Source: Oikopleura dioica (Eukaryota; Animalia; Chordata). From it: 64,000 bases of DNA. The notes beneath the pieces are model-generated. The model did no database searches, was not told where the DNA came from, and saw only the letters and a list, made by a program, of their open reading frames with translations. Shown in pieces: positions 3,975 to 50,751 of this stretch; positions within the stretch are counted from its first letter, which is position 1, and every line of letters begins with the position of its first letter. A program made the translations under genes and the position numbers. The stretch spans positions 6,076,001-6,140,000 of the forward strand of contig OU015567.1 of the NCBI GenBank assembly GCA_907165135.1, written 5' to 3'.

Positions 3975-4301
3975 ATAATAATCTATCTTTTTGTAAATTA
4001 ATTTAACACTATCAAAAAGAGCACCTCACTTGCCTTGAAGAACAACAAAAAGAGCGGCTCGACATTCAAACTAAAAAAAATAAAGCCTCAATACTTCAAT
4101 CTTCTCAAAACAAATTGATCGTAGCCGTAATACACCTTTCTCTGTTTTCATCACTTCTTATCATTTTATACCTTCTTTTTTCCTCTTTTTTTTCTTGCAA
4201 ATCTTGTACAGAGAGTTATCTACTTCAAATGAACCTATCTATTGCAAATGACATTACTGTATATTTTCAAGACTGAAGTCTTGGCTCGTCAACCTTTGTA
4301 C

Positions 4302-4470
4302 AAATACCTGAGTCAGGGTCTGAAAAGCTCATATGAAAAGCCGCGCAGTGGCTTATTTATAAACGAAGCCGCGAAGCGGCTTTGCTAATAATTCTATTTG
4401 CGGCTTCGCTTATAAATAAGCCGCTGCGCGGCTTTTCATATGAGCTTTTCAGACCCTGACTCAGGTATTT
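4302..4470. mobile_element. Palindromic MITE related to the 1988-2233 family (outer termini absent)
   Basis: aaatacctgagtcagggtctgaaaagctcatatgaaaagccgcgcag and its near-perfect inverse; shares cctgagtcagg and aagccgcg motifs. Confidence 0.75.
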
Positions 4471-4591
4471 CTATACAGTTTCCGTTGCTCAGACGGAAGT
4501 CATATGCAAAAATCTTCAAAAATAAAAAAAGTCCTACAAAAATAGTTTTTATACTTCGTTGTATTTACATTAAAATAACATATTCAAGTGC

Positions 4592-4960
4592 TTATACAGG
4601 GGTTCCTTCATCGACACAGCCGATAGAAAGGATCCTCTTGAAAAGAGTTGAAATAGAAGAAAAGTTGTTGTTGTAAATATCTTGTCGGATTCGGTACTCT
4701 TCGATTTTCTGAACCTTTCTTTTTTCAACATGGGCTTTTCGCGTCTTTGGTCGAAGAGAAGTTGATGCTTTTCGTGTTTTTCGGGAAGTTTCGACCTTTT
4801 TCAGCGAGCGAGCGAAGAAGGCGTCCATTTCGGAAAGGGCTAGGTCGGAAGTTCGGGCAGCAATCATTGCGTTGGTGTTGTTGATGATGATTGTTGGTTT
4901 TGATGATATTTTGCCAAATCGACTCATCATACCTTTATACTGAATGGTTTGGAGCGCCAA
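4592..4960 (-). CDS. Small basic hypothetical protein, copy A (paralog at 41203-41566)
   Basis: ORF ...[34 protein letters not shown]...GCVDEGTPV* is nearly identical to the ORF at 41203; true start uncertain. Confidence 0.55.
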   Translation of the reverse strand: MALQTIQYKGMMSRFGKISSKPTIIINNTNAMIAARTSDLALSEMDAFFARSLKKVETSRKTRKASTSLRPKTRKAHVEKRKVQKIEEYRIRQDIYNNNFSSISTLFKRILSIGCVDEGTPV

Positions 4961-6431: not shown

Positions 6432-9400
6432 ATGAGCTCCAGAAGAGCGAGGTCAAAATCATCAAATAGCCTCAAATCGGTAAAATAAAAAATATAATTT
6501 TAAGGATCCCCAGTAGTATTATCCTTTTCGTTTTGCGCGTTCGCACTATTCTTCTGAGAACAAACATCGCGGGGCGCGCGCTCATTGGCGGGCGCTCCGC
6601 CAATAGCGCTCAAAATTTAAAATTCAAGTTCAAAATCATTTTTCTCAAAAGAGAAGTTTTGCATGTTTTGTGTTGTTGTTTGTATTGTTTTGGATTGTTC
6701 AACACGAATTCTTGAATAATTCATGTAATAGCCAGTATTTTTACCAGGTTTTTTTATAGATTTGCTTTCGAGAAAAAACACGAGAAGATATGAAGAAAAT
6801 CAACGAAGAAGAAATAAAGATAAGTAAAAAATTCAATAATTTTCTAATTTCAACATTAAATTTGGTGAGCAATGCGCTCCAGACTTAAAATAAGGGTTGA
6901 ATAAAAACTGGGAGAGCTTGGTATCACTTGTTTGGATCTCGGTCCTGGGAAGTTTCTCGCTCATAATTAGGCTTTTTTAGTATTAGTTAGATTTTTAAGT
7001 CTGTGAGCATCGTGCTCCCATTATATTTAAAAATTTAATAGTTATAATTTTTCTAAATTCAAATCTAATCTAAAATGGTGAGCAATGCGCTCCAGACTTA
7101 GTTAGGCTTTTTAGTATTAGTTAGATTTTTTAGTCTGTGAGCACTGTGCTCCCGTTTAATAGAATTTAGTAGATAATATTATTAACACGTTAAAATAGAA
7201 AAAATAAACTATATTTTCAGCCCCAGCGACTGGAAGGAAGCTGACTTCGGCATCAAGCAGCTCTACGACGCTAACTGGATTATTTGCAACCCAACTACTC
7301 CAGGTAAAGCTTACCAATTTAGATCTTTCTTCACTAAAATTCTAGCCAACGTCATGCACGTCCATCGACGACAGATCGCTCTTCCATTCCGAAAGCCCTC
7401 ATTCTCATGACTCCCAAATCTCTTCTTCGACTTCCAGAAGCTCGATCCGAATGGTCAGAAATGGACCCTGGCACACAGTACAGACGACTCATCGGTGAAG
7501 AAGGCGCTGCCTCCAAGGTAAAATAATATCCTTCATTCATTACTTAAACTTTGCTCCATTCAGAACCCAGATAACGTCAAGCGACTGATATTCTGCTCTG
7601 GAAAGGTCTACTACGATCTCGTCAAAGAGCGAGCTGCCCGAGGCTTCGAAAACGATATCGCTATTGCACGAGTTGAACAGGTACTTTCAGCTTAGAGAGA
7701 TCAAAGGCTACATTTTATTCTAGGTCGCTCCATTCCCATACGATCTCGTCATTCCCGAGCTCGAGAAATACAAGAACGCCGAAGTCTACTGGGTCCAGGA
7801 AAAGCACAAGAACATGGGTTTCTACGACTTCTGCAAGCCTAGACTGCGAACTGCATCCAACTGGTCCCGCCGAGTCCACTACGCTGGCCGAGACTCCGCC
7901 GCCTCCGCCGCTGCTGGTTCCAAACAAGTAAGATTTCAGCCAAATTTGCAAAAGCTATTTTGCGTTTCAGGTTCACAAGATCGAGCAGGACAAATTCATG
8001 AACGACGCTTTCCGAAAGGGCGCCAAGGGTCGATTGTACAAATAAGCCACCTATTCTATCACTTACAAAGTACTGATTCCTTCCACAAAGAAAAACTATT
8101 GTCCTTAAAGCTTGTGTGTTCCCTTTTCTCACCTCCGTTCCTGTTGTTCAATAATTTATTAAAATAATGCACCTACATGCACAAACCTCCCTCTCTTCCC
8201 TTACGTTCAACAAAAAAAAACTTTCTAAAAATCCAACTACTAAAAATTTTGCCTGTTTTGTGTCTGAGGAAAAAAAAACTGAAACTCTTATTTATTCGGC
8301 CATTCGTTGTTTTGGCCCCGCAATTCATTGTAGCCTTCAGTAACTGGTATCAGCTAATCAAAGTAAAAATACAAACTGTGTGTACTAATAAGTTGAAAAT
8401 ACAGTAGAGCGCAGTCCGATACAGTGCTCAAAAAGTTACTTGTAATGAGCAGTAAGGCGTCGAGTAAACCGATTTTGCGAAGAGTTTATGATCATTTAGA
8501 CAGGTAAGAACGATTCTAGACGTCGAAACGGCTCTAGAAATGAAAAAAACATGGCTTATCAACTTTTCAGTGAGCCTGAAGATCTGAGAAAAAAGCTCTC
8601 TCGGGTGCGTGATTCTTTCGATGCTTTGGACAAAGAACTTTTTCCCTCTGGCAGGCCGAAAGATATCTACCGAGAACCCCAGCTTTTTCCTGGAACAGAA
8701 GATGGGAGGGATAAACATCATCGTCGAGTCAGAACTGTCAAGCCTGTGTTGAAACGAATCGTTGATCCGATCGAACCTTCCAGCGGAGAAGAAGATGATG
8801 ATCTTGTGATTGTCGATTCGAAGCCGGGAAAATCAAGAAAGCACCGGAAAAGGTCGGGTTTCCGGGAAAGAAGAAAGAAACGAAAGCGGTCGAGATCTTC
8901 TAGTCCAAGTTAGAGTTGCAATTTCCCTTAGAGCATGCCCATTTTGATCTTTCTTTTTTCAACTCTTTCAAAAGTCGAAAGCATCGCTCAAGATCGCGCA
9001 GTCCTATCCGCCGGCGAAAGAATCGATCCAGAAGTACAAGCAGAAGTATGCATTACTGCTCGAAGCATCGATCGAAAAAGTCCAGAAGTGAAAAGAGGGA
9101 GAAACGCTTGAGTCGTCGGAAAAGCAGTTCTACGAGTAAAACACAAGAAAAACTTCCTCAGACTCTTCCTCCTCGACAGAACAACGACGAGCTCATCGAA
9201 TCTCCCAAATGCTGTTTCTAGTGGCGATCAGTCCTGTTCAAGAACTGCTAGCTCTGATGTCTCTCGCACAGGCGTTCTCCAAAAAGAACAAAAGGGCAGT
9301 ACAACCGATGTCTGGTCAGAAGCATCAATCAGAAATGCTCGACTCTCGATGATGATCGTGCAAGTGGATAAAATCCGAAACAAGGTGAAAAAAAATCGAA

Positions 9401-12400
9401 AATTCCCGAAGCACACGCTGAAATCTGTTGGATAGTTCCTCATCATCAGAGCCGATTACTGGCCGCTCGACTGAATCTGATGGAGATAAGAATGCTGACA
9501 CTAGGACTCTCCCTGCTCGAGCTGTTGCTAGTCAACTCGACGCTTATTTTTGATGGTAGCTTGTCTTACAGCAAACGCACGGTAGAGCATCTTTTCCTAG
9601 GTAATATCATCTGCCATCGTGGACAAGTAAATCGGTGAATCTGTTTGTCTCATCCGCGAAATGTTCAACTACGCTCGCGACAATCAACCCTGCATTATTT
9701 TTATGGACGAAATCGACGCTATCGGTAGCAGACATCTTTCAGAAGAAATCTCTGCTGATTGTGGAATCCAAAGGTATCTTTACTTCATTTTTTCTAAAGC
9801 TTAATGTCGCTCGCAGTACTCTGATGGAATTGCTCAATCAAATGGACGACTTCGACACGCTCGGAAAGGTGAAAATGATCATGGCGACGAACAGACCTGA
9901 CACGCTGGATCCTGCACTTTTGCGACCCGGTTGTTTGGACAAAAAGATCGAAATCCGTATGAAGCCACCTTAGAAAATCCTTGATCTAAACTCAATTCTA
10001 GCACTGCTAAATGAGCAAGCTCGACTTGACATTTTGAAGATTCACTCGCGTCCACTCGCTACTCACGGAGGAATTGACTTCGAGGTAATCTTGTTTTCGC
10101 TTCTCTCCCTTTTTCACCCCTTTTTAATAGGCGGTTGCCAAGCACTCGGATACATTTAATGGAGCTGATTTGCGAAACATTTGTACAGAAGCAGGTCTTT
10201 TTGCAATTCGATCCGAACTCTTCAACAAAGCCGACCACTCACTTTGCAAGAACAACGAGACAAACTATTTCTCTCTCTCTCTTTTCTTTTCTTATCATCA
10301 CTGTTTCTTTTTGTCAACTAGTCATTCAATACAAAGGCGATTGTTCACACGCATTCTTTAATTCAAAAAAAACTCGTGTTTTATCTTTCCTTTGCAATAT
10401 AAGATTCATGATGGAAATAGAAAACTCAGCACTCGTTTGATATTTCTGACAGTTATCCTTATCTGTCTGCAGCGCGCATAAATTTAGACAGTTTTGTAAT
10501 GGTGAAATTGTTGGCCGATCTCAAAGTAGGAGAAATTCGTAAAGAGCTTGCTTCGGTGCAAGAAAGTACGAGGGGCAAGAAAGCTGAGCTTCTCCAAAGA
10601 TTATCCGACTTTTTGACAAGCAATGACTTTAATCCCGATACCTACGATTTTGCTACTCATTCTCTGATGCCGGTATCTGACGGCGAAGGAGAACTTCACA
10701 TTGTCGAAAATGAGCAAGAATCCTCTGCCACGGACGCAGAAGACCATGAAGTCCAAGAAATTCACGATGGAACCTTGAGAGTGACAGTTTTCGAGTCGAA
10801 GGATGAAGCTGACAGCCAATGTGATAATCTCCAAAATGGGGTTAAATTCGTGCACAAGCCCCATCGGTCGTTTCTACGACTTATGCAATCCAAGGGGGTC
10901 CCCAAACGCGGGAAAGATTGGCGATCATGGGAAACGTCGGCTATCGGGGTCATTCTACAGCCAATTTTTGGGTTGGATGGTTTTGGCGATTACGACTTTG
11001 CAGTTGTGGAGGAAATAAAAAAAACTCGAACTGGGCTAGAGTTTAGACATTGCATAGAGAGATTAGACTTGTTCTATTCTCTAAACATAACACCAGATGA
11101 GAATGGGGCTGTCTTAGGTGATGAGTACATACACACCATCGACAAACTTCTCTGTGCAGAAAAGAAGCGATTTTGTCTTCCCCAGCGCCACGAACTTACT
11201 TCATTTATTTATACACCAAAAAGCAAATGGAAGAGAAAAGAAAAAAAACAAGTTAAATTGCACATCTCGCCTGATAACTACCCCATCCTCGAATGGAAAC
11301 ATTTCCAGTCCATCGCCGAATGTTTCATCACCAAAAAACATCGGTACTACAAACTTTACATGAAAGAACGAAGCAAAATGACGAATGGAGTTTTCCGGAA
11401 ACATATACGACAATCAGCAAGTGATTTTCATGCCCGATATGGTGATATAACAGCAAGATCCCATCTTGTGCAAATTGATCATATTGATGATTTTGAAAAG
11501 TCAGTATGAGTAAATTTACCGTTTAATCATTTTTCTACTAGTGCGACTCGAATCGCCCAAGAGGGCGCGATAGCTGAGGGAGATGGAGATATCAGCCTTG
11601 CAATCGAAAAATACGCCGAAGCAATCGCCTTGGATCCGACGAACAAGGTCTACTTCGGTTATCGATCGGACGCGCTCCTCCAACAAGAGCAGTTCCCCGA
11701 AGCTCTTAGGTAATAAGATTCAATTTTTATCCATCTCTCCTTTATTTCTAGTGACGCGGTGAAAGCAATTGAACTTGAGCCCACATGGCCAAAAGGCTAC
11801 GCCTTGAAAGGGCAGATTTTGATGGCAACAAAGAAATTTGAGGAGGCAAAAGTCGAGTTCGGAATGATGAAAAAGTTCGATGAATCTCCTGACGAAGCTA
11901 TCGAATGGTTAAATATCTGCCAGCAAGGTAAATCAAGCTCAAGGATCACTTACTTATTTTCACTTTTAGAAGAGGAAAAGGAATGTGCTCATCGTGAACG
12001 AACTGAAGAAAGCGTCAATCAAGCTACGTTGGAAAGAAAGCAAAAGGAGCAAGAGATCGCTTCGGCAGAAGATGAACAGCCTGCGCTCGAAGTAAAACGA
12101 AACGAGTATCGAGAAAAAACTGGTGTCGTCTTGGAGAAAGTCAGCAAAAGTAAGTTGATTAAGTCAGAACAATATTTACAAGAATTCAGAGCCTGTTCGG
12201 CGCAGAAAGCGTTTGTTGAGCAGTGACGAGGAAGACGCAGCGGCTAGTTCAAGCGATGAGAAGAAGAAGAAACAACGAGACTCGGATGAAGAGACACCTG
12301 TTCTATCGCCTTTCAATCCCAAGCACAATAATACAGAAGTCACTGAAGACGATTCGTCTTCCGATGATGATTCCAACGCAGAGGTAGCAGGAATAATCAA

Positions 12401-15400
12401 TTATAGAGCTAAGTTTATCATTAAGGCCGATGTACAACAGCAAGCGATGCTTTCGTCGATCAGTGGTGAAGAAGCCGGACCACCAAAGCCACAGAAAGAC
12501 ACTTTGGTTAGTTCAAACGATGGAGCATCTACTGATATTGCGGCTCCAACGCCGGTGGTCGCTGCTTTGGATGATCAGAAGATCGCTGAAATGCGTGCCA
12601 AGATCTGGGAGTCGAACGAAAAGCTCAAATTGCTGGGCGCTAGAATCCAGAAGTTCGATAATAAGAGCGTTAACAGGATGAGGTTTCGCTCTATGATCGA
12701 CTTCTTGCGTCTAGCTTACGATCAAATGTCGAAAAAGCTTCATCATCTCGTCGAAACCGCCGGCAAGGAAGGGCTTGCACCCTTGGAAATGGAAGTCGCA
12801 AGTTTGGGAAAATCGCTGGAGCAGTTGTCTAGCGATATTTTTGACGAAGAGATGCACTGGCACAATCAGCAGCATGAATTGGACAGAATCAACCAAGAAA
12901 AACGGCAGCCACATCAGCCAGCGATCGCAACTCCTCATCAACACAGTCAACTGTCAAATATGCCGTCACAGCATTTTCAACCTCCTCCTCAAATGAGCTT
13001 CAACCAGCGATTTACTCCCCAAAATAATTTTGGCCCCCCTCAGCAGATTCCTCCTCATCATCAGATTCCTCCTCATCAGCAGATTCGTCCTCATCATCAG
13101 ATTCCTCATCACAGACAGTTCATGCAACCACTTGGCAACAGCCAGATGAATTTGCCACGCCGTGGACCAGTGGCGAAAAATGGATGCAAACCAGCGCAAT
13201 CCACAAAAAGAAAAAGAACAAAGAATTAAAATGAAGCTGTTCTTTTTGTATTTTATAATTTTGTATTTTTCGAGCTCTTTATAAAACCGGAAAAGCTGTC
13301 ATTTTAGGATCCCGGCTCTCCTACAATATATCTCACATTTATGTGTAGAAGTTTATTAATTTATTTTCAGGTTCAGTTTACAAAAGCGAAAATATTTCCT
13401 AGGAAGTTTTTCCTGATCCGCTTTGAAGAGAAACAAACTTGGTGCGAAGCTCGCGACGATTTCGTTTTCGAGCAAAGAATTCCAGAAGGAAGCGAAGAAA
13501 AGTCTCTTGATAAGAATGGAAAGTTTATACGTGTTTTGCGCGAACGAGCGGAAAAGTTACTCAAGAATGAGGGTGGAAGTCGGCGCTGCGAAGGTAAGTC
13601 CGATCTTAAAACGAGATCGTAGGGCCTTCATTCACGACCTGGAAGATGAATTTAAAACGGTCAGAGTTGCATCGCTGAATTCTCTTTGCACCTTAGCCGC
13701 TAAAGAGTCCACTGGAGATTTCGCCAAGCAGTCGATGGACTACATGGTAGACATGCTCAACGATGAATTGGAAATTGTTCGCCTGAATGCGATTAATAAC
13801 TGCGTAAAATGGCTTCGCGAGTTCCTGTTATGCTGGAAGATCAGAATGAGAATGTATTGACGAGCTGTTTGCCCGATTCTAGGCGAGAAATTAGGTAAAA
13901 TCATTAAAGAATGGGCAAAAAAGATAATTTACGGGCGAAAAATTTATAAAGAAAGCGCTATTTCTCCGTTTCATCTTTATTTCAGAATTTCTACCCATCG
14001 ATTACTGTCCTGCTGCCGTCTTCTGTCCAAAAATGCCTGAATCGAACAGTAGAAGAGCTCATCCAAAGTCTTCAAAAGTTCCCCGAGGACGAATCATCCA
14101 TTTACGTAGCTGTTTGCTGCCTGTTAAATGCCGACGTCCCTCTTCATGCACAACAATTGTTGGCTCACAAGATCCAGAGCCCATTAGAAAAAGAAGCTGT
14201 CTGAGGCCTGGATCTGTTGGAAATCTGCGTTCGATCCTCTGGAAAACTCTTTCACAATGAAATCGGAAAATATAGATTTTTAAATGAACTTATCCGCGTT
14301 GTCTCTCCCAAATATCTTGGACCAAGGTAACGTGGCTTAAAACCTGGCTTATCGCATGAGCATCAGTCCGCTGCGCTCCCCCTCTCGCCTCGAGTTCGGA
14401 GGACTTTCATTTGGAGGACCTCTTTTTGCGCCCTCACGCAGATGTAGGGACTTGTAATTTGCTTGACCTCCCAAAGAAAAGCCACTTGACTAAAATTTAT
14501 TTTGTTTTTAGGTCATCACCGCAGGTTAAAACTAGAATTATTGAATTGATGTATGGTTGGACTATTGCATTAAAAGGTTGAGCTTTTCTTATTCTTACAG
14601 CTACTGACTTTGAGTTTAGACCAAATAAAGATTGCTGATGCGTATTCAATGCTCAAGAAACAAGGCATCGTCAAGAAGGACCCGAAATTCGACGACAGAA
14701 GATTTCTCCCTACTCCTCAACAAAAAGAAAGGTACCAATTTAATCAAAATCAGTGTTGAAACATTGTTCAGGTGCGCATTAATAAAAGACGATGCTGAGG
14801 AAAAGCGACTGGCGGAACTTCTTGCGTCCAAGAATCCAGAAGACATCGCCCTGGCAAATGAAATGATCAAAACCATGTACGAGCAAGACAGTTAAAAGAC
14901 CGATCGAGAGGCGCGCAAAATGCTTTTGATGACAGAAGCGAAGGAAAAATACATGCTCATGGATGATATGATTGCTGCTGGAGCTACGTAAGGCCAAGTT
15001 CTTCTCTCATTTATTAACACTCTCTGAATAAAGAGCGAAATCGGCGATGGCAACAGTCTATTCGGACTTGGAATCAATGAGGCCACAGCTCTTCCGTCTC
15101 GCGTCAGAAGCAAATGAAAACAACGATGAGTTGATGGCGGTCCTCAGGCTAACAGATGAAGTCAATCGAGTCATCAATGTCGTGAAAGATAAATACCCCA
15201 ATGTAGTGGAGCTTTCGAAGTAAATTCTTTCTCATATTTCCTCCCTATTATTGTATTCTAGCGCTTCTACGCCAACTTCAAATTGAAGCAGCGTTCCATC
15301 ATCTGGTCTCACTGCAACATCAAGTCCGGATACCCAAACTTCTCGCCTCCACGACCTCGGCGTCGACTTGAACCTGCTCGGCCTCGAGGATGATCCTCCA

Positions 15401-18400
15401 TCGAACAGACCAGCTCAAAGTAGTGGAAATGTGATCGACGATTTGAAAACTCTGAACAGTATATTTGGGTCCTCTCCAATGGGAGAAGCACCGTAAGTCT
15501 CAAGAATTTTCTCTTAATCAATTTATTAGCTACGATCCTTGGCAGAGGTAGTTTTATAAAGGATTTTGTTCATTTATGCATGCATTTATTATCAGCTAAC
15601 AATTTTGCCTTTACTCGTCGATTTTGATGATTACTGAAGTTCTAACAATTTTTTCAGTCAGCCAACTCTGCTGGATATTAACCCATCAGCACCTTCTGTA
15701 TCCGCCATGACGAGCCAAGCCAGTCCCCAAATCGCTGTTTGGCCCACTCCACCCGAAGTGGCGGCTTTGACGGGAATCAAAGTCAATCTCGCTGATTTCC
15801 AGGCTTCTTCGACGACAAGAACTCTTGTCGACGATGATGGAGTCAGAGTCATCCTTGTCCGAGGAGAGAATAAAATTCAAGACAGAAGTGATGTCCCTGT
15901 ACTGCTAGTCACTTTTGATTCGACAAATCCTGCACCTATCGAGAATTTAATGTTCAATGCTAAAGTTGCAAAACCTTTCAGGTAAGAATCCTTTTCACTT
16001 CGAATCCTTTCAAACATTTTCTTTCAGAATAAAACTATTACAGCCATCAGGCAACGAGTTCCCTGCGTTCAACCCCGTTTCATCAACTTCTTCGCGCATT
16101 ACACAATTGATTCTAGTGGGAGGGCCGCTCATCCCAAATCAACTGGCAGCTCTCTGCGCCAATACCTAAATAATGTATGGGTAGTAATTTATGACTGTGG
16201 TCTCTGTTCGTAAACGAATAAACTATTTTATCAATTTTACCAATTGACAGAAGCCCAAAATGGACATTTTGTCTTTTCTTAAGTTTTGAATCCTAGGAAG
16301 CATGCATACCGCGTAGCGGTAATATTGTTGAAGTATTAATTATCCATTGCAATTTTCCTACGCAAAAGAAAGGGCTTAATTGATATTCGTGCATGTATAT
16401 AATGCTAAAGGACGCAGGTACGCAGTTTTTACTAAAGTGAGATATGAAATGTACGTGGATTGTACTAAAAAATATGCATGCTTACTCAAGGAATAATAGC
16501 GATCACCTTCCAAGATGCAATTTTCAGAGTCCAAAAAAGCACCTGTTTCCGAAGTAAAAGTAAAAAGAAGGAGAAAGAAAAAGCCAAATATTTTCCTCGC
16601 TATCTTTACTAATTCTTTTTATGCGGCGAAGCCCCCTTCAAAATCAACAGATTCGTAGGACAGAGGCTTATCGGCCAACTCTGGATTCCTCTCACGATAA
16701 TCGGACTTTTTGGCCCACCAAAAGTACGAAAAAGATAGCAACAGACGAGTCTCATTTCCTGGAAATATCTCATCAACAAGAAAGTTTTCAAAAGTTGCAT
16801 GGAGTTTGCAGATTTTTCATTTTATTCAAAAAAACAGGAAAAGAGCAAAAGTTTCGGGATAAAATTTGATAAAGATAGTATTGCTTGTCATTTGATGAAC
16901 AAATTTAATAAAGCTAATATTGCTTGTCATTTAATAAACGAATATGATGAAGGTTGTCTATTATGGCAATAATGAAGAATAAGTTAATCATTTTATAAAA
17001 TTAAGCAGTAAGAGTATAAAGTAGTTTTAACAGAGTAAATGGTAAGAGGTACATTGTTTAGGTGAACTATAACGATTCATTTTATCATGATACGAACATA
17101 TATCTCATTTCATTTTACATATGAAATATTAAATTGCTTGGAATAAACAATGATATACCACAAATAGTGTTTCATTTTGAATACTTTGGAGCGTTTCTAT
17201 GCAAAATTTACTTTGTAAAGCTCATTTAGCTCATTAAGCATAGCTTTTTTTTGAATGGTTGTCTCTTTCGAAAGGGATTTTTTCACCTCATTTTTTATTA
17301 ATGAAGTGAAGGAGAAATTTTCTTCTTATATTCGCAAGAAAATAGGGCGCATAGCATGAGATCAAGAGTCGTAAATATTTGAACGACCTAGAAATTGACG
17401 TTCAAAAAGTTTTTCCGAGCGATGTTGTTTGGTAAACCTACTTCAGAAACTCACAATTGCCCTCAATTGTCCTTATCTGTCCGACTTGTTACGTAAAGCT
17501 ATGAACAGCATGCTCGAATCATTTGTTTTCTATTTCCGTGGTCCTTTATCCCTTTATCGGCTGATTTAGGAGCTTCGCTTTTTTCGCCATCATTTTCTGA
17601 TTCAGTTGACGATTCTTGATCCGTCAGACCGATTTAGCGGTTATAAGGAAACGCCGGTGAAGACAAGGCTCATTTTATCCAAGAAATTTATTTTTTTTGT
17701 GTTGACAATGGAAATCGACGCTCTCATGAGAGAACGCGAAGACCGCCTCGGTCTTCGAGATTTAGCCCTCGAAAAAGAGAGTGAAAGTAAGTCTGATATT
17801 AAGTAAGACAGAAAGATTATATGCGATTTAGGGGAGGATGAAATCAATGCACTGGAACAAGAGCGACAGGAATTGGAACTACGATTGTTTGAGATGGAAG
17901 AAAGGGTTATTGAAGCCCAGCAGGAAAGAGAAAGATATCAAGCACTTGCACAGCTAGCGCAAAATGATGCTGATCGACGTAAGCTTTTAAATTTAACACA
18001 GATAAAGACACTTATCCCGAATTTTAGTTGAGGATGAAATAATCGTGAGAATCAATGCTATGGAAAATGAAGAAGAAAACAACGACGAGGGTTTCGTAGA
18101 GGTGGATGAAGATTTGGATGATCTGAGCGACGAAGAGAATGCTGATTGATGATTTTTTTTTGACGAAGTACACTGAAAACAGGTTGACACTTGTAGCTGA
18201 CACAATTGGAATAAAATAAATAACTACCTTCAATACTATTTGTATTTTTCTATGCAGTCACTTCGCATTTGCAACATGGTTTGAACTTCAGATTCAGATT
18301 TATAAGTCAGCTGAAGGGAGTCGACTTGATTGAGGTTTCGAATATCTGGGAATTCTTTGAAGCCGATTTGCTTGCGTTTTGATTCAGAGTTCGTGCTAAA

Positions 18401-21400
18401 TTTTGCCAGCTAAATAACAAGCAATTCATCTTACATTAAAAAAACGATAAGTCTTTGAAATTCGACGAGTAGTAAAGACGGGTCGTTGAATTTCTTGGCA
18501 TTTTTTTCTAAGTCGTCTATGTCGTCGTAATTTTCAAAGATATCGTAATCAAAATAATCTCTTCTTTCTTTCTCCAACGACGCGAAAGAACTCCAATCAA
18601 GGGGAATAACCGGCAAGAACCTTGTTATTATAAATAAGTTTGAATGTTTTTGGCGTTTTACCTTACTACGTTTTTTCTAAATCTGCCATTTATTAGACCC
18701 GATAATATGTTTTCGTCTTGAAGCCCATTCAACTTCTTGAGTTTCAAGCAGGCCCAGAAATTTTCAGTTGGGAACCCTGGCCATAAACAAATCGTACATA
18801 CTCCATGAAAGTTATGACGCCAAGAAACACTGAAGTTTTCAAGATAAATCGCGTCGAAGATATTTAACTCTCCGTAGAGCCTTTCGATATCAATTGGATC
18901 GGCACGTCTTTTGCGGATGGTGATTTTGATTATATTTTTTCTAGTATTAAGAAGAAATAGTGTAAGCAAGCATCCGGGAATAATCGATTTAAACATAACC
19001 AGGCCAGCAGTTGAAATCAACGGATTAACAGAATTTCGCCGATTTTTGCAGCTCCCGATTTCCCAGCTGTCTATTTTCTCTGGGATTACAGAAGCCAGCT
19101 CATCAGGATTAACAGCACAAAATGCCTTCATTTACGTCTTTTTTCGTTTTTTTCTATTTTGAGGTGCAAAAACGGAACCGTGAACTAAGCTAATCAATTG
19201 TTTGCAAATGAATTGACACTGTTATTTTATAGTCGCGGAAGTTTTATTTCTTTGCGGAAAAAAAGGCGAAAAAGTGGACAAGTTGATCTGTGAAATGAAA
19301 GAATAAAAAGACAAGCTAAACGATGAGGATGAATAATTATAATAAGTCGAGTACTGGAGGAGTTGTTTTATTCGTCTGAGTCGGACGAAATCGTTATGAC
19401 TGCATCAGTTTTCGCTTTTTTCGTAGCTGGTTCCTTGAATAAGGTCTTTTGGATTGGTAGAATAACTTTGCATTTACCTGAATCTCCTCCGAGTTACGAC
19501 GAAATAAAAATCTTTTCCATGCCGGTTTTCCGGCGAGTCTTAATTTTGAAGTCAGAACTATTCTCAATAAGAGTTGAGACTAACTTTTGACGATATAAAA
19601 AGGGGTTCTTCTTTCGGGGCGTTGAAGGATTGATCCTTGTTGGGTCTTGATAATCAAAATTGATTGGAGTCGAAGGTCTAGCTGGCTAAAAGATAAAAGT
19701 CAGAATATGCACATAGAAGTAATAGATTGCCTGGAAGGAGTCGTCGTCGGAACTTTCCGAGTTGATGTTGCTTGCGAGTGCTTTAATTCTATCCGCAAGG
19801 CTCGTCTCGTCGTCGTTATCTCTCAGTTCTTTTTGAGTTTGCTCGTTCTCAGCATCGAAATCTCTCGTGTAAAGGTCTTGTGGGTCATCGTCCGCCACAG
19901 TTGGGTCATCATTGATTAACTCGCTCTCGGATCCTGCTTCCTCATCGCTTTCCTCCCTCTCTCCGAAGATCAGTCCTCGATGGACCGTTTGATCGAGATT
20001 TTCTTCATTATCCGTGTCATCCTTAATTATGAAATGAAACTCTCTTCGGAAAATTTAGACTAACTGAGCTAAAGTCTTCTATTTTCAAATCACACCGCGA
20101 TAATTGTCGCTCCAAAATTTCGTCTTCTGTCAAAATGACGGCTTCTGTTTGAGAGTCGGTGTCGGGGCAGTCAGGAAATTTTTTGCTGTTTTGGAAAAAT
20201 CTTGTAACCTTGACGCTGTCGAATTTTCCGATCGGGAGGCCGCAAAACGTATTTTGTAGTTTCCTAAATAAGATTAAGTTAGCTTTTATCAGAAAAATTG
20301 AAAACTTACGAGAATAAACGCGCTTGCATCAAAAATTCTGCAATCGAAACATCCTCACTCAAGTTTTTGACGACTTCATTGGCATACAATGGTTCGTACA
20401 ACGGTTTATTGCGCGCGATCTTTTTCAATTCGTTATCAACGTCGTTGCTGTCAAAGACCATCTGACCGGTAAAGGGCGTTATCGCTCTTGATTCAAATTA
20501 TGATTGTTTCTTGAAGAAAAACTTACTTTGAAATCAGTGAATAAAACCGGCCGTCGAGAATTCCTCCTTGAAAAGATGCAGGGTCCAGGCATTTTTCCGT
20601 TGCTTTAACGAGAGTACATCCATCCCGGTTTCCAATATCCATCAGGATTGTATGAACCTGGATTTTTCCGTCAAATCGCATCATGTATCGCGCGTTTTCA
20701 AAACGTACGAAAGAGAATTGAGGAACATCCCCGAATTCTTTAAGAACAATTTGATGCCTCGGAGTCGGTGCGACAATCCTCAGCAATATTATCGAACTTC
20801 CGTCCATGACGCAGTGAAGAGTTAGTTCGATTAACCTGATTACAAATAAGAACTTTTTACTAGGGGTTTTTCATACCTGTCATTGTAAAATTTTTTAGAT
20901 CCGTCTTCAATTGTAAACAACCATCCGCAAAGGCCTATGTCTTCGAAACCTTTGTTGGCAATCCATTGATTCTCACGTATCTTTTTCGGAGGTATTCGTT
21001 TTAAGCCGCAAGAGCTTTTTATTTCTTGGAATTTTCTCATGGTTCGTTTTTGCAAAAAAAAAACTTTGATGTTTTTTGGGGGGATTATCACGAAGGATGA
21101 ATGTCGTGAGAATTGCTGTTGGAAGGAGAATATTTGTCGCTGTTGCACTTGAGGGAGCTATTTGAAATAGCACGATTGAGCTAAGTTTTCATGACCACTT
21201 CGCAGTTGCTCCAAAGCAAACCCATAAACGCTCGTTTCCTAAAATTTTCGCACCAAAGAACTAAGAAACCACGTTCAAAGAGAAAACACAGCGATGAATT
21301 GCAACTGGTTTCCCGCAATTTGCGGCGAGAAGAACGAGGTAATAAAAAGATTTTTACAGAATTAATTCACATGAAAAATAGGAAACAGAGTCATATAAAG

Positions 21401-24400
21401 TTACTACGGAAACTGTTAGTCGAGAAACTACCGCTTCTTATTTTGAGTTTTCCAAGAGCGTAAATGATCTGGAATCTTCCTTGCCCCAGACTCGACCCAC
21501 ATTTATGCCCGAGTCAATATCCGTAGAGACTTCTATTCCATCATCTGTCACTACGGATATGAACACATTTTTGTCCACTTCTGGCCAAGAGGTTATCGAG
21601 CCGATCACATTTTTGTCGACTGCTGGCCAAGAGCTAATCGAGCCGGACGCATTTTTGTCGACTCCTGGCCAAGAGCATATCGAGGTTTATTCTGAGCGTC
21701 TGACATCAATGTTTCGTGAAGATACCTCAGCTGCAATTTCATTTTCATTTACATCTCTACAAGACCAGAGTCAGGCTATTTTTGAATCTCAGACCACCAT
21801 CCATTTTCGAGACACTACAGCTGTAACTACGCTTGAGGATTTTTCCCATAAAGCAACGACTGCTGTTTTCGAGGCCGAGACTCTAGGTTATTTCACAGAG
21901 GCTTCTCAAACTAAAAGTTCCGTAATTTCACAAACATTGACTCAGACGGGTTTGAAGGCGCAAACAACTCAGACTTCTTTCGTGCAGACGTCAACGTCTT
22001 TTGACATGTCTGGAGTAAGAGCGCTTTGAAAAAACGAAAGACTAAAAAGCTATTTCAGACGGATGGAACAACGGAGACTGCCATAGCAAGCAAAGAAGCA
22101 AACATTCCGGGTTGGCTGATCGCGGTCCTGGTTATTCTTGCAATGATTGTTCTCGTCGTTTGCATCGGCTGTGGTTATCTTGTAAGTTTTTATCATCTGA
22201 AACTATAAACAAACTGAATAAGGTGTACCGGCTGTACAAGTGCATCAAGGGATCCCAGCGAGAGCATGACTACGAGATGGGGCGTCCGAACAAAGACAAG
22301 GATCGAAAGAATGAACACAGCGACCAGGAAAACAAAGAAGATGACCCGCATCGAACAAGCCACCCCAAAAACGCTGGAATGGGCTTCAGGGACAGTGATC
22401 AAAACCATCGGCCTGATGAAACTAAGAAGGATGACAATGGTGATGCCGGTGATGAAACTAAGAAGGATGAAAATGGTGATGCCGGATCAGACAATTCACA
22501 AGGTGATTTTCTCAATAGAATTTTTTTTGGCAATTCCTAACTTTCATTAAAGGCGGAAACAGCTCCAATCAAAAGACCAAAAAGGATGAGAAGACCGAAA
22601 ATACGAATACACAAGGTAATACCAGTTTTCACTTTTCTACCGATTTTAACATATCAAATAAGACGGAGGAACAAATATGGACATCAAGGAAGAGAAAAAA
22701 CAAACAATTTCCAAAGACGCGGCGAAAAAAATCCCAAAAAAAAGTAAGTTTTTCTCCGAGAAAAATGCCACAAAATTAACTCTTTCCTCTAGAAAACGTG
22801 TTTAATCGCGGAGGAAAATTTCCATGGAACCCAAGCCCAAAATCAAGCAATTCCCAACCATCGACAAGCTTTTTGGCGCCGATTACTTCACCAATACAAG
22901 CTGGATTACAGACAGGTAACTTTGACAACAATTTTTTCAGCTCCTACTCACCTCTTTTTTAGCTGCAAACAAGATCGCGACTACCCTCCCACGAAACCTT
23001 ACCGTCCAATTCGAGCAGGATAACAAAAGTAATTTATTTTTATCAGACAAGTATCCAAACTTCTTTTAATTAGCGGTCACCGTTCGATCGGTCAACAAAA
23101 TTGAGGTCAAACCGAAGCCAATGCCTGGAAAAGTTACAAAGCGACCCCCAAATCGACCACAAGCACTTCAACAGCAAAGATCAGAGTCACGACGTGTGTC
23201 ACTTCCAGAGCCCCGACCTGTTTCTCCTCCAGCAACTCGATCTGAGCCTCTCCAAGAATCACGACCTGAGCCTCTCCAAGAATCACGACCTGAACCACTT
23301 CCAGAGCAACGACCTGAGCCGCTTCCACAGCAACGACCTGAGCCTCTCCAAGAATCACGACCTGAACCAAGACCTGAACCTCTCCGAGAACTACGACGAA
23401 GCAATCGTCTTATGACACCGAAGAACTACGTTGAGTTCTCTTCAGACGAGAGTCTTTAAATCGCCCTACATCTCACGAAATCCGCATAAGAGATAACTTT
23501 TGAAGCCCCTGTAAATTCTCAAATCTGCTTTTCATGCGTAAGAAAAGATAATCTAAATAAAGAGTGAATTGTGTGAAAATCCGTTTGAATTTATTTGTTA
23601 GCATGTTAAGGTTGACATAAACGAAAAAAATAATGAAAACATAAATGAATGAAGGGATCAAATATATCCAGATGCGTTCTTGAGTGGGGTTGCAGTCACT
23701 TGGTCATCAGCAATCTGCCATTTTACATAGACATTGTTCAGTGCATTCTTTGTTGTTTTTCGAATGACGATCTCGTTCTTACGGGCTACCATGCCTGTCA
23801 TTGTAGCGCTGAACTTTTCATCGTCAAGGAGAGAACGTACGAAATGCTCCACCGGTGTTTCAATATCCTTTTTGACGCCTTATTATGAGTTGAAAGAATG
23901 GTTTTATCCTTATAAGTGAACTTGAATTAGCTTACTGAGTACTTTCTAACCCAAGCCTTTCGTTGATTTTTTTATTTTTATATCCCCCTTATCATTTTTA
24001 CCCTTGAGAATATAACATTTAGAGCTCAAGCCACAATAGGTGCCTTGCCCATATATCCCACCCTCGATTTTGAATAAACCCGGCGTTTTCTCCAATTTTT
24101 TTCAGCAATTTTTCGGCTTCCTTCTTAGAGTTATTTGATTCTCGCAGCATCTGGTCAGTGACTTTTTCAGGAACCATCCATGTGTCAACGAAATTTTTCC
24201 ATGACTCCTTCTTCTCAGATTTGACGAGTGTTTCAACATCATCACCTGTATAAGCAATCATAATCGAATCGGTGTCTGCGTAGCAAAGTTTGAATGATCC
24301 TTCCTTCAGATGAGTGCATATATTATCAATGAAATTGAACATGACCAATTTGCTTTTCTGATAGACTTAAAAAATATTAAGAGACCAATTCACGAACAAA

Positions 24401-27400
24401 GACATACTAAATGCTGAAATATGTGTTGGAACGCTATCTCTCTGCGTTTTCTTCTTTTTGACAATTTTGACCAAAGATGTGGGTCCTTCAGCACTGATGA
24501 TTTCATTTTTTTCGAGCAAAGGCGATCTGATGTAGCGGTATAAATCAGCATCATCGATGTATTTTGTTTCCCTGTATTTAGAAACATTCTTGCCAAACAA
24601 ACCAGTGACAATATTAAGTACCAGCTTTGAAAGTTTTTCGCCAACTTTGTTCTCGGCAATATGATACCGGATTCGATCAGCGACCAGTCTATCGACGAAA
24701 GGAGCCATCGGTTTTTCCTTATTGTACATAAGAAGATAATGAACCTTCTAAAAGCGACATGATTAAGTTTTAAAAATCTTTTAGCGAACCTTAATAATAT
24801 ATCCCATATCCAAATAAAAATACAGTAGAGGAGTGATTAGAAGCATTTTTTCTCCGCCAGAATTATATATCAATGTGTTCTGGCTCACAGGCATCTCAAG
24901 ATTTCCGATTTTTTGATTTTCAGATAGCATATTTCTTTCTATCTTTGTTTTCTTAAAAATCATAGGAAATTTCAGATCTCCATATCGATTATAAACAGCT
25001 TTACTTGGCTCAATTTCCACCATTGCGAATCCAAAAACTTTTCGTTCTATCAGAGCATCGATTAGATCTTTTTCTCTTAGTTTCTTATCGTGGAAAAGAA
25101 AAGGACACCAATCTGGAGCCCAATTTTCTCTGGCATTACGAGCGAACTCTTCATCGGCCATGTTTCTTTTCATAAATTTGTCGAAGTGACATTCTCGCTT
25201 TATTTTAAGGATGTCGATTTTCTTCTCTATGAATTTCTTTCTTTCCTTGTCTCGTTCTTCGTCAGCGTCCTCATTTGTTTGGATTTTACATGAACGACAT
25301 TTATGCCAATAGCAGCCGTAAAACTCAACTCCCCATCTGATATTGTCTTTCTCATAATATCCATCAAGAGAATACTTCCCAATTTTCTTTTCGCCTATGT
25401 GATATGCATGTTGGATATCCACACCAGATTGATGTCGCAGATATTCTAGATACTGCAAGCTTTTGAGGGAGATTGATTCCTTGCCCTCATAGAGCAGATT
25501 CAACTTGAAATATCCAACATCACCAGCACGAGTAGCGTCACCGATATCCCCGGGATATACAGCGATTCCAGGACCACATGGCAGAGAATCCTGTAGAGTA
25601 AAAGGATACAAACTATTTGCATCAAGCTGTTTAATCATTTTGAAGAGTTCGCCATTGTCAGCATATCGGGCGGCATGTGGAAGAGGCCCATCTGGTTGGT
25701 TCAATTCGATCAGTCGGTGAAACACGTGCGTCATTCCTCCTGTCAAGGCTTCACGGATGTCCTTTCTCAATTCAGCATCAGTGATCGAGTAGATGGGTGT
25801 CGCACGCGCGTATTTACCAAACGCAATCTTTTCAGCAACTTGCGCCAATGAGATATATTGATGGATATTCACATTAAATTTTTCGGCAAACTGGTTACTG
25901 TATTCTACAATGCCTTGGCTTAGCATGTCTGTGTCGATGAGATTATAGACACGCAGCCAATCGAGCATCGTTTCACATTTTTCTTCTTCGAATAAGTCCT
26001 TTGAAGCCAAGTATTTATCAAGAGAGATATTGAAGAATTTTTTGGAGTCTTCGTTGATTACAAAGCAGCGAAGAGAGTTTTCCGCAAAGTATTTGATTTC
26101 ATCAGTTTGAATTTCCCATTTTTTTGCGAGGAGCTCGATATTCTCATCTGTGTTTTCGTAGCAACACTCAAAACTATCTGCTAGACTGTTGAGTTTTTCT
26201 ACAGGGACATCAATTTCAGCAGCAAGATCATCAATCGTCCAGCAGTGTTCAATAAGAAATTTGTTGACCAGGTGAACTTCTTTCTCGACAGGAATGTAGA
26301 AAGAGCTATAAAAGTCGGAGTACGGTGGAAATCCTTTGTAACTGATGAGCTCGTCAGTGTCTTTGAAACGTTCGTATGGGTAAACGGCTTTTGCTATCTG
26401 CAATCCAAGCGATTGAACAAACTATTGAACAAAAATTAAGAGAGGATTTTCAATCTGCCCTTTTACCTTTTCCAGAGACGTCCCTCTTTCAACGAGATTC
26501 ATCATGTCCTTGAATTTGATATTGCCATAGGAAGCAAGCATTGTTCCGGCGCCTCTTTGGATCATATTCATCTTTGGCTCAAAACGAGTATCCTTGTCTC
26601 GCTTTGTGACTAGTAAGTGGGGATGTCTACGACGAACAACTTCAGTCAGAGCATTGATTATAACAGTCAAGTCGAAGCGTTCGCTATTCCAGCCGTAAAC
26701 ATTGAGAGAATAGAAATCGTCAAGATACTTGAGCCGATCGCAGAGTTCTGCTTGCTTTTCAACTGGAAAATTGTGAAATTTCTCACTATTCTTCAATCGG
26801 ATCAAGCGCCATTTTTCATTATCGATCTTTTTCGAAAGAGTCCTATTAAATTCTTCCTGAATATCACATAAGTCCACGTAAAATTCATCAAGCAAGGAGA
26901 AAAGAGATTCTTGACTTGTCCCTCGGCGCCATAGAAATTTCTTTGTGTACTCGTCTCCGGCTGGGTTGTACGCATGCCATGCAATAGAGATCAGCTTATA
27001 CGCAGACAATTCCTCAGTCGTGGAACTTATGTTCTTCTCTTTTTCGGACCTTGGGACAGAAGCAGTTTCAATGTCAAAAGCCACAAAGCTTTGATGAAAC
27101 TCATTTGTACGCAAAATCTTGTCGTAAATCAGATCGTAACGAGTGTGATCAGTAAACATTCCATATTTCTTCTGTTTATGTGAGAAAGTTGTTCTGTCAG
27201 TGCATGTTTCCAGATGTTTCGAAAACTTTGCACGATCTGAGCAGCTGAAGGAGCAATTAGGCGTTGGACAGAGGTCAAAATTGATTTGCTCGGGCAGAAG
27301 CTTAAAGAATGTACTATCCGAGAATGTTTTCGTCTGATCATCCTTCGAAAGCTCCAGTTGAAGTATTTTTCCAGAGCCACAATAAAAATCTAGCTGTCTG

Positions 27401-30400
27401 GAAACTCTGTCAGCACCAGGCCTTGACAGTCTGCGCCAAAGAACAAGTTTGACATTAAACAACCTCGAGAAATTCTTGTAATTGGAGACTGTGATATCAC
27501 TCGTTTGTGCGAAGTCGATCCATTTCTGTCGTATTTCGGCTGCTTTTTTGAAAAACAACCTCGGGCACTTGTATAAATCCTTGTTTTTCACTTTCGCAAC
27601 GGCTTCGAAGATGGTCAGCTCAAGAGTATTTATCCGGTCAATTCCATGGTTGATAAATCCATCGTCAAGAAGCTTAAGCTGATTGAATCCATTAAAACGC
27701 TGGTCTTTGAAGAAAAACGTCAGACCGACACTGCCTGGACCCGGATGCTGCGTTTTATAAAAAAGACTATCGCCGCCATTCGCTGTTTTCTGATAGATTG
27801 TGAAATGGACATTAAAGTCGCTTTCCAGTGCTTTTCGAAATTTCAAAACTTATCGTTTAATGCCATTTATTATTAAAATTTTGAATATTTTCCTGATAAA
27901 CATGGGATTTTAAAAAGTCCGTATTTCTTCTGAAAGTCGATAAATTTGGAGTAATCAGCACGACAGGGATTTTTTGCACGTTTCGGATCTATGAGAGTCT
28001 TCAGTTTCTCTAATCGACGCTTGTCAGGTTTTTTCTTCTCCTGATTAAGAAGAACTCCAAGATAAGTAAGATTGTAAAATTGGTTGTTATCTTCTTTCAA
28101 ATGTAAAAATCTCATTTTTATCGGAAAATCATACTTTCCTGTTTTATGTATGAAAAAATTGACAGCGGAAATTCACCATACATGCGAAATTTCGCACGTG
28201 CACATGAGAAGACAAATAGTTATTTAAAAAATTCTGTTTCGAGGAGTTCTACGCCGTCCTTTCAACAAGCTGTCAAAGTAAAATCAAGAACTCCCGATTA
28301 CAGGATTTTTTTCAACTAAATAAGAGTCAGAATTCCAGAATGAGCGGAAAATTCAAAGAGTCAGAGATTGATTTCTTTCGGGAGTTAACAAAAGAAAAAT
28401 TGAATATAAATGAACTTCTTACAGAAGAAGAATATAAAGTGATGAATGATCACCAGGAAAGAAAGCAGATTTTAGATTTTATCGATAAAGGAAGTTGTCT
28501 GTATTTCTGTTAAGCTCTCTGGCTTTAGTAGACTTGCGAATAACTTGGAGTACTATCTTCAGTACAAGTTTCGACTATCTCATAAATCCCTCAAAGTTAA
28601 GGGAATGCCGAAAACCTATATCGATCGATGTATTCTGTCAATTCCATACGTCAACAATAACAAACTGAGCGAAGTGACTCGTATGATTACCGAAAATTTG
28701 TTTTTTCCTTACCAAATCGGTGTTGATGCATGGTTCATGAGCGCGTCGCAGAAGATGATCGGTTTGCTAACTGTTTCTCAAGTTTTAATAGCCGATGAAT
28801 AAACTTAAGATGGAAAAATTCAAGAAGACCTGAGGCTGTACTACTCGGGCTCTTCAACATGGATCAATGACACAAGAAAGGGTTATTAATTTTGTAGAAA
28901 AATCTTTGAACGCTCTTTAAAAACCTCATTGAAGAAAAATAAAAAATGATGAAGATGTTACTCAACTTCTCTCAGAGACCAAAGATGAGACATTAGAGTA
29001 AGTGTTTCTTCAAACTTTAGTTATAAGAATTATATTTTACAGAGAACGCCTTTTGGCAAGTCACGAGTTTGACAGGACTAACTTTCATCATTCGGGTGTG
29101 AGCTTGCGCCAGGTGCTTTTGCTTCGATATGAAATCGAAAAAACATATGGTAAATTACTTTTAATTAAATGAAAAATAATATGATCCTATTAGTTTATCC
29201 GAGCAATAAACTTCAAATTCGCGAAGAAGACGAGCAAGAAGAGGCGCAAGAAAGGGCAAAGTCAAATATTAGTATTCCATGAGTAACTGTTTCTCACTTC
29301 TGATTTAACACGATCCGACGGATTTCATTCTTCTCAATAAACTAGAAAGAGCAATTTAAAATGTTCAGTTTTTCAAAAACCGATAAGTTTGACACTTTGG
29401 GATACGAGGACTGTAAAATCCAAGAAGCTGCTCCTTATTGCAACACTGATGATACTCTTGAATTTCACATTGTTCCGCAAAAGAGATATTTCAAGGCGTG
29501 TGATTCTCGGCTGCATTTTCATATTGAAATTCCTGAAAATCATGTATTGGACAATGACTTTTGTGCGAAGCTCTTCAAAGGGCTTCCTAAGATTGAAATC
29601 GCAGAAGACCCAATTACAAGCAAATCATGTGATTTAGACTCTGCGTTTTCTTCTCATTTCTTGAATAAGTCATTATTCGATCAAACAACAATCGACTCAA
29701 CTTTTCCGATTATGGGCGTCTATGATATTTTCGAAGCTGACCAAGACGACATCGGCAGAAGTATTATTGAGAATCGAAAAATGTATGCGAAGGAGTTTTT
29801 AAAAGAAATCGAATTCGAAGGAAAAACTTACAACACTAAATGGCTGAGATACGAATTCAAAATCCCAATAAATCATGGAATCGCTCGAGCACCAATTATT
29901 TTACCAGCTGGACTTGGAATCCATCTCTCGTTTGAGCGTGCTCCAGCAAAATTTTCGCTTTTAAAAAAGAAGAGTATGCTTGATGCGACTGACGATGTCG
30001 GTGATGTGGTTGAGATTGACTATGATTTTCCGGATCCAGTTGTTAAGCTCGTCAGGCCTGTTTTTAAAGCAATGTTTGTTTTCTCTGAATCATTGGAAAG
30101 GGAAATGAAAAAGTATGCGACTTCGAAATTCGAAACCACGTTCTTGGACTACTGTATAAGAAGACCTACCTTAGACAAAGGCGATACTGATTACACTGTT
30201 AATCTTACTAAAGGAGCGTTCCCGAAATACGCGGTTCTTTCTGTTACCAGTCTCAAACGCTCACATGGAGATTACAAGCAGTCACTGACAAAACTAGAAC
30301 GTGGAAACATAGAGCAAGTTGATGTTCTCGTTGATGGTTCGAGTCTCCCTGGTTACCCCCTTAAAACAGATATGGATTTTTACGAAAATTTCCTTATGAT

Positions 30401-50059: not shown

Positions 50060-50210
50060 CTCTTTATTTCTAAAAAAAATCGTTTGCTTCGGAAACCCAT
50101 TGTCCTTTCTTCAGACTTTGCAATTCTCAATTCTCGTATTTTCGCACTTTTCAAATTCATCCATTCGCTGCTCACAAAAGCCTCTCTTTCAGACTGAAAT
50201 AAAACCAAAG

Positions 50211-50440
50211 ATGACTGAGACAGCTAACACTGGCTTGGACAGCGCTTACGTCAAGGAGCAGCTTGGTGATGTTCTGACCGATCTTCTCTCCGAACTCGTG
50301 CAGGTGCAGCCCAGCGACCCCATTGAATGGCTTGCCAATGCTTTGAGACAGCACGCCCGCGCCCAATCGGTAAGTCTTTTCATCCCTTTTTCCTGTCTTT
50401 TTCTAAGAAGCAATTTTAGACTCCAGCGGCGACTGCTTAG
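50211..50440 (+). CDS. Small DPY30/RIIa-domain protein (DYDC-like)
   Basis: DSAYVKEQLGDVLTDLLSELVQVQPSDPIEWLANAL motif; 2 exons. Confidence 0.75.
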
Positions 50441-50751
50441 GAAGCACGAATATGAAGATGACTCAAAAGAGTCGAATCCACTCCATTTTCTTTTTATAAC
50501 CAATAAAACCATCTATTTTTCCTTACACTCATAAGTGTTTCTATTTCATTTTGATTAATTGTGTTCAGTAATCATAATTTCCCGCGTCCTAGAATGATTA
50601 GGCGGGCACCTACATTACTCGTTCCTACGAGAGGAGAAATCGAGGCCGCCTGGCACGCTGCTCGGGGAAATCAAACTAACGAGGTTGGTACTTGCTGTTT
50701 GTTTATTTTTACATCAAATTTGTACAGATTGGCAGTTTTATACCGTAATAA

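Follow-up and report, generated by a model that had tools for sequence, protein, structure and literature searches.

A Maverick element on chr2 of Oikopleura dioica with a row of intron-bearing host gene pieces beside its left end

The element and its row of host gene pieces

The window analysed here is the whole stretch of 64,000 nucleotides (nt) at 6,076,001–6,140,000 of chr2 in the Okinawa assembly of Oikopleura dioica (OKI2018_I69, GCA_907165135.1), and it contains a Maverick/Polinton element of about 33 kb at window positions 6512–39624 (Table 1). Just inside the left terminal inverted repeat (TIR) lies a cargo row of about 9 kb (7221–16169) made up of six host-derived units, all on the + strand, namely two open and apparently complete genes (RS-rich and SAP-TPR) and four disabled pieces (OGDH, PSMC6, INTS4 and GGA), so that fragments of host genes sit between the two TIRs of the element. 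An earlier model reading, made from the letters of the window alone (here the sequence-only reading), had placed six units of host origin at these positions and on this strand, and domain matches, PDB matches and the parental alignment agree with it. Its description of the row as a train of truncated fragments fits the OGDH, PSMC6 and INTS4 pieces, but the RS-rich and SAP-TPR genes look complete and the GGA copy is nearly full length.

The chance that six units fall on one strand is about 1/32, and the gaps between them are 110–440 nt. In O. dioica an operon is defined by genes on the same strand that are at most 500 bp apart (PMC11067885), and with one strand and gaps of this size the cargo row would count as an operon. 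The content of guanine plus cytosine (GC) is 0.42–0.43 in the cargo, resembling that of host genes, and 0.35–0.40 in the core of the element.

The TIRs begin with AGTAGT and close with ACTACT, the first 28 nt of the pair have no further copy in the window, and they are flanked on both sides by a perfect 6-bp target site duplication (TSD), ATCCCC, for which a match in 6/6 positions has a chance of about 1/4096. Vertebrate Mavericks have the end motif (AGT)2//(ACT)2 and perfect 6-bp duplications, as described by Barreat and Katzourakis (PMC8097293), and as the ends found here fit this motif the element is by its ends a Maverick. The TIRs and the TSD enclose the whole cargo row, as expected from the sequence-only reading, which had put the block within a Polinton.

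Table 1. Features of the Maverick element, in positions of the window.
Feature	Position	Strand	Remarks
Left TSD copy, ATCCCC	6506–6511		sequence read; same hexamer after right end
Left TIR, begins AGTAGT	6512–6570	+	59 nt, 95% complementary to 39566–39624
AT-rich spacer, short GC-rich stretch beside TIR, internal direct repeats	6571–7220		
OGDH fragment: last five exons, four introns, stop codon, 3' flank	7221–8401	+	95.3% to parental locus
RS-rich gene, three exons, open reading frame (ORF) open	8446–9221	+	two GT-AG introns of ~66 nt, read directly
PSMC6/Rpt4 fragment: second half of AAA domain and lid, introns kept	9661–10259	+	
SAP-TPR gene: N-terminal SAP, TPRs, coiled coil, Q/P-rich tail; frame open	10499–13229	+	
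INTS4 internal piece	13570–13809	+	human residues ~360–437 of 963, E 8e-12
GGA gene copy (VHS, N-GAT, GAT, ear), introns kept	14109–16169	+	nearly full length
Interior AT-rich DNA and repeat-encoded ORFs (42-nt, 36-nt, 24-nt tandem units)	16170–24018		
Protein-primed polymerase B-like gene, four ORFs in one frame	24019–27846	-	weak Pfam matches
ORF of 426 amino acids (aa), no family match	29361–30641	+	
Adenain/Ulp1-like cysteine protease remnant, 135-aa ORF	32200–32607	-	Peptidase_C48 E 1.5e-4; Peptidase_C5 E 0.015
Integrase region, four ORFs in three frames	33024–34819	-	rve core in one ORF
Right TIR, closes with ACTACT	39566–39624	-	
Right TSD copy, ATCCCC	39625–39630		

It is very improbable that the row was built by a collector of the Helitron type or of the Mutator-like (MULE) type and was later inserted into the Maverick. 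Elements of these types are well known for gathering gene fragments together with their introns (PMC6431247), and the 650-nt spacer on the left of the row and the AT-rich DNA after 16170 have no assignment, but the block between 7.2 and 16.2 kb shows no TIRs and no bracketing direct duplications of its own, and the TIRs, TSD or Helitron ends that the sequence-only reading had named as the sign of such a secondary insertion were not found. Among the ORFs of 50 aa or longer on the two strands of the block there is no transposase, Rep, helicase or reverse transcriptase domain, the core ORFs have no Rep or helicase domain, and a hairpin-plus-CTRR end is not evident in 16170–16400, which was read by eye and is a weak test.

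The OGDH piece and its intact parent

Similarity searches with the cargo were run exon by exon. The OGDH piece corresponds to aa 805–1020 of the 1020-aa O. dioica protein (the last 216 codons) together with the 3' untranslated region (3'UTR), with the Pfam domain OxoGdeHyase_C at 7522–7692 and 7724–8164 and a PDB match to human OGDH with E 2e-21. One OGDH exon led in a metagenome scan to a full-length OGDH mRNA of a sister lineage (L006), to which five exon blocks and the 3'UTR of the cargo align, and a protein search with the ORF of this mRNA reached, via an O. dioica cluster, the intact parent PAR.g12687 (1020 aa). This gene is located on another chromosome, so the cargo is not the only OGDH copy of the genome, and the search for a parental locus that the sequence-only reading had proposed has thus been answered for this unit.

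The cargo aligns to positions 9253–10430 of the parental locus (L008) as one single block with 95.3% identity over 1182 nt, and four introns of 42–43 nt are common to both. Because this block runs across four introns, the stop codon and the 3' flank, the OGDH piece was captured as unspliced DNA, and this proves capture of the OGDH duplicate at the DNA level and not by retrocopying, as had been concluded earlier from the retained short introns. The left breakpoint is at exactly 7221, inside a parental exon which continues upstream in the parent, and the acceptor-like motif ttttcag that precedes it is part of the unrelated spacer; between this spacer (6571–7220) and the OGDH parent there is no homology. 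On the right the similarity breaks off about 340–350 nt beyond the stop codon, where unrelated sequence follows. We also considered that an ordinary host operon had been caught between two ends of elements; this is ruled out, as the OGDH unit is a duplicate truncated in the middle of an exon.

Capture in one step, where a single contiguous operon-like host segment was taken up and later truncated by internal deletions, would agree with the co-orientation of the units, with their spacing, which is that of an O. dioica operon, and with the presence of housekeeping-type genes, which are frequent in operons (PMC11067885). The neighbours of PAR.g12687 are genes for HLH, GGACT, mitochondrial carrier, 2OG-Fe(II) oxygenase, galactosyltransferase and CCDC81 proteins, and no other cargo gene is found within 6 kb on either side of the parental OGDH. 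Together with the break about 340 nt beyond the stop codon this speaks against a common source for the row, and a one-step origin has in our estimate little probability. The earlier claim of serial capture from unrelated loci accordingly holds for OGDH versus the rest, as the neighbours of the parent are not in the cargo, but it is not shown for the other units among themselves.

The exons of the cargo OGDH differ from the parent by 2.0% mismatches and the 3' flank by 1.3–4.5%, and introns 1, 2, 3 and 4 by 10%, 24%, 31% and 0%, respectively. Over 214 codons there are 10 synonymous differences, 3 amino-acid changes, 1 nonsense change and 1 frameshift, which gives a synonymous divergence (dS) of 0.072, a non-synonymous divergence (dN) of 0.006 and a dN/dS ratio (omega) of 0.08. 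With free drift from the time of the split, about 17 non-synonymous changes should have accumulated, versus 4 seen (Poisson p ~2e-4), and from this deficit most of the divergence must have arisen between functional alleles, so that the capture is young. The comparison indicates that the capture is recent and was made from a different allele, in line with the dating by dS that had been suggested earlier. With a heterozygosity of 3.6% in the sequenced animal (PMC8008620), no source beyond a second allele from the same population is needed, and the piece has been a dead copy for a short time only. As a yardstick, dS is 0.79 between the cargo OGDH and the mRNA of the sister lineage, and 1.56 between SF3B3, a host gene in the window, and its own sister-lineage mRNA.

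The divergence from L008 is patchy, with 24% and 31% in the introns at 7521–7563 and 7682–7723, and two alleles are probably involved. For a C-terminal OGDH protein of 240 aa from the Bergen genome (CBY41122.1, on a 5.2-kb scaffold), an origin as a second captured piece is the less likely reading; it is one residue and a model gap apart from the Bergen full-length protein and is therefore most simply explained by an allelic scaffold.

The other cargo units, the copy on XSR and the element core

Two of the units have in-frame stops, as the sequence-only reading had noticed: OGDH with its nonsense change, in addition to the frameshift, and the GGA copy, which is disabled by at least one stop in the VHS exon. 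The GGA copy covers VHS from about residue 24, and residues 12–82 of 154 of the ear domain. In the PSMC6 piece an exon of 50 residues is about 86% identical to Rpt4 residues 258–307 of 397, and the public model of this piece covers positions 49–131 of the AAA profile and the AAA lid; the stretch 10078–10437 gave no useful match in a PDB search. The INTS4 match comprises about 80 residues (about 240 nt) with flanks at 13340–13985 that have no assignment, and a PDB search with the region upstream of it (13308–13619) gave no match. No Pfam family was found for the RS-rich gene.

The first 55 residues of the SAP-TPR gene, the SAP exon, have relatives with about 60% identity in marine samples. Residues 56–336 of the SAP ORF (10499–11509) have no relative among 1.84 billion representatives except two Okinawa models, and none among the Bergen O. 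dioica proteins either; a word-index protein search gave no match to the ORF within the length range searched. Judging from these searches, the gene is perhaps specific to the lineage, or a mosaic in its own right. Ten ORFs of the window, taken from cargo and core, were not members of any cluster in the protein collection.

Two gene models alone are related to the SAP ORF over its full length, chr2.g5610 (977 aa), which is the window's own, and XSR.g15471 (963 aa). They differ by 3 mismatches and one gap of 14 residues in 963 aa, and both begin at the same internal methionine of PSMC6 and continue into the SAP-TPR gene. This difference is under the typical allelic level, indicating that the part with the PSMC6 piece and SAP-TPR was recently copied to or from another chromosome. 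The second copy on XSR is seen at the protein level, in gene models. The public annotation fuses the PSMC6 fragment and SAP-TPR (9661–13229) into what is either a real chimeric gene or a predictor artefact, and the fusion in the public models is probably the gene predictor's doing.

A mosaic of this kind could also be produced by a mis-join in an assembly built on Nanopore and Hi-C data (PMC8008620), and the joining of the PSMC6 piece to SAP-TPR in the public models, probably by the gene predictor, would fit with an artefact. The OGDH piece is however 95% and not 100% identical to its parent and has lesions of its own, which is not what misplaced parental reads would give, and the junction between PSMC6 and SAP-TPR is found at two places in the assembly. 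Mis-assembly is for these two reasons highly unlikely.

In the core of the element the rve integrase domain is located at 33962–34183 on the - strand with E 3.8e-7 and 30.8 bits, and at least 2 frame changes or introns interrupt the integrase region. The polymerase B region has about 1270 codons in one frame with 5 in-frame stops, of which a stop might lie within an intron, and two adjacent ORFs in it have weak matches to DNA_pol_B_2 (E 4.6e-4) and DNA_pol_B (E 2e-3), while the two large ORFs of the region have no PDB or Pfam match. From the stops in the polymerase frame and the spread of the integrase over three frames, the chr2 copy looks inactive. A PHROGs profile search with the core ORFs gave no match, and the single-sequence AlphaFold model of the 426-aa ORF, with a pLDDT of 30, is unusable.

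Immediately inside the left TIR and facing the cargo, the GC-rich stretch 6571–6610 contains CCAAT-like boxes and could be a candidate promoter. The same spacer has direct repeats at 6863–6887, identical to 7076–7100, and at 6974–7022, similar to 7108–7156. Tandem repeats in the interior of the element are found at 21561–21686, 22414–22485, 23159–23392 and 31343–31700, with units of 42, 36, 24 and 120 nt, and some of them fall within ORFs that encode S/T-rich or P/E-rich repeats.

Outside the element, a direct repeat of 312 nt with 88% identity is present at 4594–4905 and 41205–41511, about 1.6 kb beyond either end, indicating that the insertion took place in a repeat-rich or locally duplicated stretch. 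Palindromes resembling miniature inverted-repeat transposable elements are found at 1983–2238, 4291–4481, 40534–40716 and 43031–43073, with arms of 58–117 nt that are 81–93% complementary; they are mutually related and present on either side of the element. On its right are host genes (51739–57782) for SF3B3, an FGGY carbohydrate kinase and an ankyrin/Fn3-associated protein, with introns of 42–75 nt. SF3B3 at 51.7–55.9 kb is chr2.g5626 with zero amino-acid mismatches, and the DNA of its locus (OU015567.1:6125793–6133782) is 100% identical to window positions 49793–57782. A nematode host, which the ttttcag acceptors and the operon-like spacing had at first suggested, is rejected, as the host genes are those of O. 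dioica. The FGGY kinase ORF had no exact record in the protein look-up. Rfam and tRNA scans of the window gave no match.

Origin of the row and its counterparts in other systems

We consider it rather probable that the Maverick took pieces of unspliced host DNA into the arm beside its left TIR, and that it was already loaded when it integrated on chr2. The captured pieces would be between a few hundred bases and about 3 kb in length and come from more than one locus, and they might have entered by end joining or by template-switch repair of breaks in the element DNA, with host DNA serving as filler or template. In O. dioica classical non-homologous end joining (NHEJ) has been lost and microhomology-mediated end joining (MMEJ) is used (PMC11067885, citing Deng et al. 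2018). This repair route is inferred, as are the order of the captures and how many there were. The row of two open genes and four disabled pieces could be transcribed in an operon-like manner from the TIR side, as the tightly spaced layout on one strand would make pieces without promoters readable as an operon. The loaded unit of 33 kb would then have integrated at ATCCCC on chr2 via its (AGT)2 ends, with integrase and polymerase probably supplied in trans by another copy, because both genes are interrupted here, and a sister copy of at least the part with the PSMC6 piece and SAP-TPR would be the one on XSR. That the loaded element moved as a unit is supported only indirectly, by the TSD and by the near-identical gene model on XSR.

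Several points weigh against this course of events. A parent has been located for 1 of the 6 units (OGDH), and an origin from several loci is thus a matter of OGDH versus the rest. In the core, the matches to polymerase and protease are under the curated cut-offs of Pfam and rve is just under its own (32.6 bits), and none of 92 ORFs had a family match to jelly-roll capsid proteins or packaging ATPase, which Pfam covers poorly. An intact TSD is also compatible with pieces that were patched in after landing, and the copy on XSR could be a segmental duplication and not a transposed element.

The last two points belong to the main rival, accretion in place, by which a dead Maverick on chr2 was patched with host DNA after its integration and the XSR copy arose by segmental duplication. 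It is helped by the inactive appearance of the copy, with 5 polymerase stops and an integrase in three frames, by the heavily scrambled state of O. dioica genomes, where breaks are mended by MMEJ (PMC11067885), by the fact that a TSD outlasts internal insertions, and by the repeat-rich flanks of the element. Random patching is on the other hand not expected to give six pieces on one strand in 9 kb beside a TIR, the XSR and chr2 models are closer to each other than typical alleles, which points to a recent copying that involved the cargo, and cargo beside the TIR is a known pattern in Mavericks (10.1101/2022.07.12.499685). We regard accretion in place as unlikely.

Mavericks of nematodes carry intron-bearing cargo of host origin beside the TIR (Widen et al., 10.1101/2022.07.12.499685). 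They are of the same element type as the one in O. dioica and share with it a block on the TIR side with a GC content above that of the core and with intron-bearing genes of presumed host origin. The O. dioica block, of about 9.6 kb, differs from theirs in being placed distant from the integrase, at the end on the 3' side of the polymerase, in its composition of six units of which four are disabled pieces of housekeeping genes, and in having one piece with a proven intact parent in the same genome. The sequence-only reading had held that capture is not a well-described behaviour of Polintons; this is right for strings of fragments, but intron-bearing Maverick cargo is known from the nematodes.

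With the Pack-MULEs and Helitrons of plants (PMC6431247) the locus has in common that pieces of unlinked host genes are carried as DNA with their introns and with breakpoints in exons, that a number of them are joined in a string which the annotation presents as chimeric genes, and that the carrier is probably not self-sufficient. The carrier in O. dioica is in contrast a virus-like self-synthesising element of 33 kb with an rve integrase, and not a Mutator or rolling-circle element, its core genes remain, although interrupted, and all pieces are on one strand. Unlike what defines a Helitron, it has TIRs and a TSD, and no Rep or helicase domain was found in the ORFs of either block or core. 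Polintons of insects (Pannagram preprint, 10.1101/2025.02.07.637071) also carry foreign DNA and are found as multiple copies that share their cargo, but this consists of other transposons (LINE, gypsy) and not of host gene pieces. Teratorn and the Starships/Enterprise elements (PMC6431247, PMC8092012) are likewise large mobile units with passenger genes, but their enzymes are a piggyBac transposase and a tyrosine recombinase, and their passengers are whole genes and not pseudogene pieces.

The O. dioica locus is thus one that joins the cargo pattern of Mavericks with the fragment strings of Pack-MULEs and Helitrons. Serial carriage of intron-bearing fragments is well known for these plant elements and barely described for Mavericks, and the O. 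dioica genome papers (PMC8008620, PMC11067885) do not mention Mavericks or Polintons. The interpretation as a Pack-Polinton, which the sequence-only reading had put forward, is partly supported. Its extension to a "Pack-Maverick" family, which in a chordate without classical NHEJ would repeatedly string unspliced housekeeping pieces beside its TIR, spread the array and make chimeric genes, is offered tentatively and is somewhat doubtful.

In light of the locus, two public models, chr2.g5610 and XSR.g15471, are to be flagged as chimeric, each combining part of a proteasome ATPase with a gene that is unrelated to it. Mavericks are known to ferry a few whole cargo genes between nematodes, and this picture would be widened to mosaics of several housekeeping pieces, if these can be demonstrated to be DNA copies of intact parents that later reached a second chromosome by duplication. 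O. dioica is suited for this question, with an extremely scrambled genome, no classical end joining and operons that are able to express newcomers without promoters. If the reading is true, Mavericks would do in animals what Pack-MULEs and Helitrons do in plants, namely serve to shuffle exons and duplicate genes.

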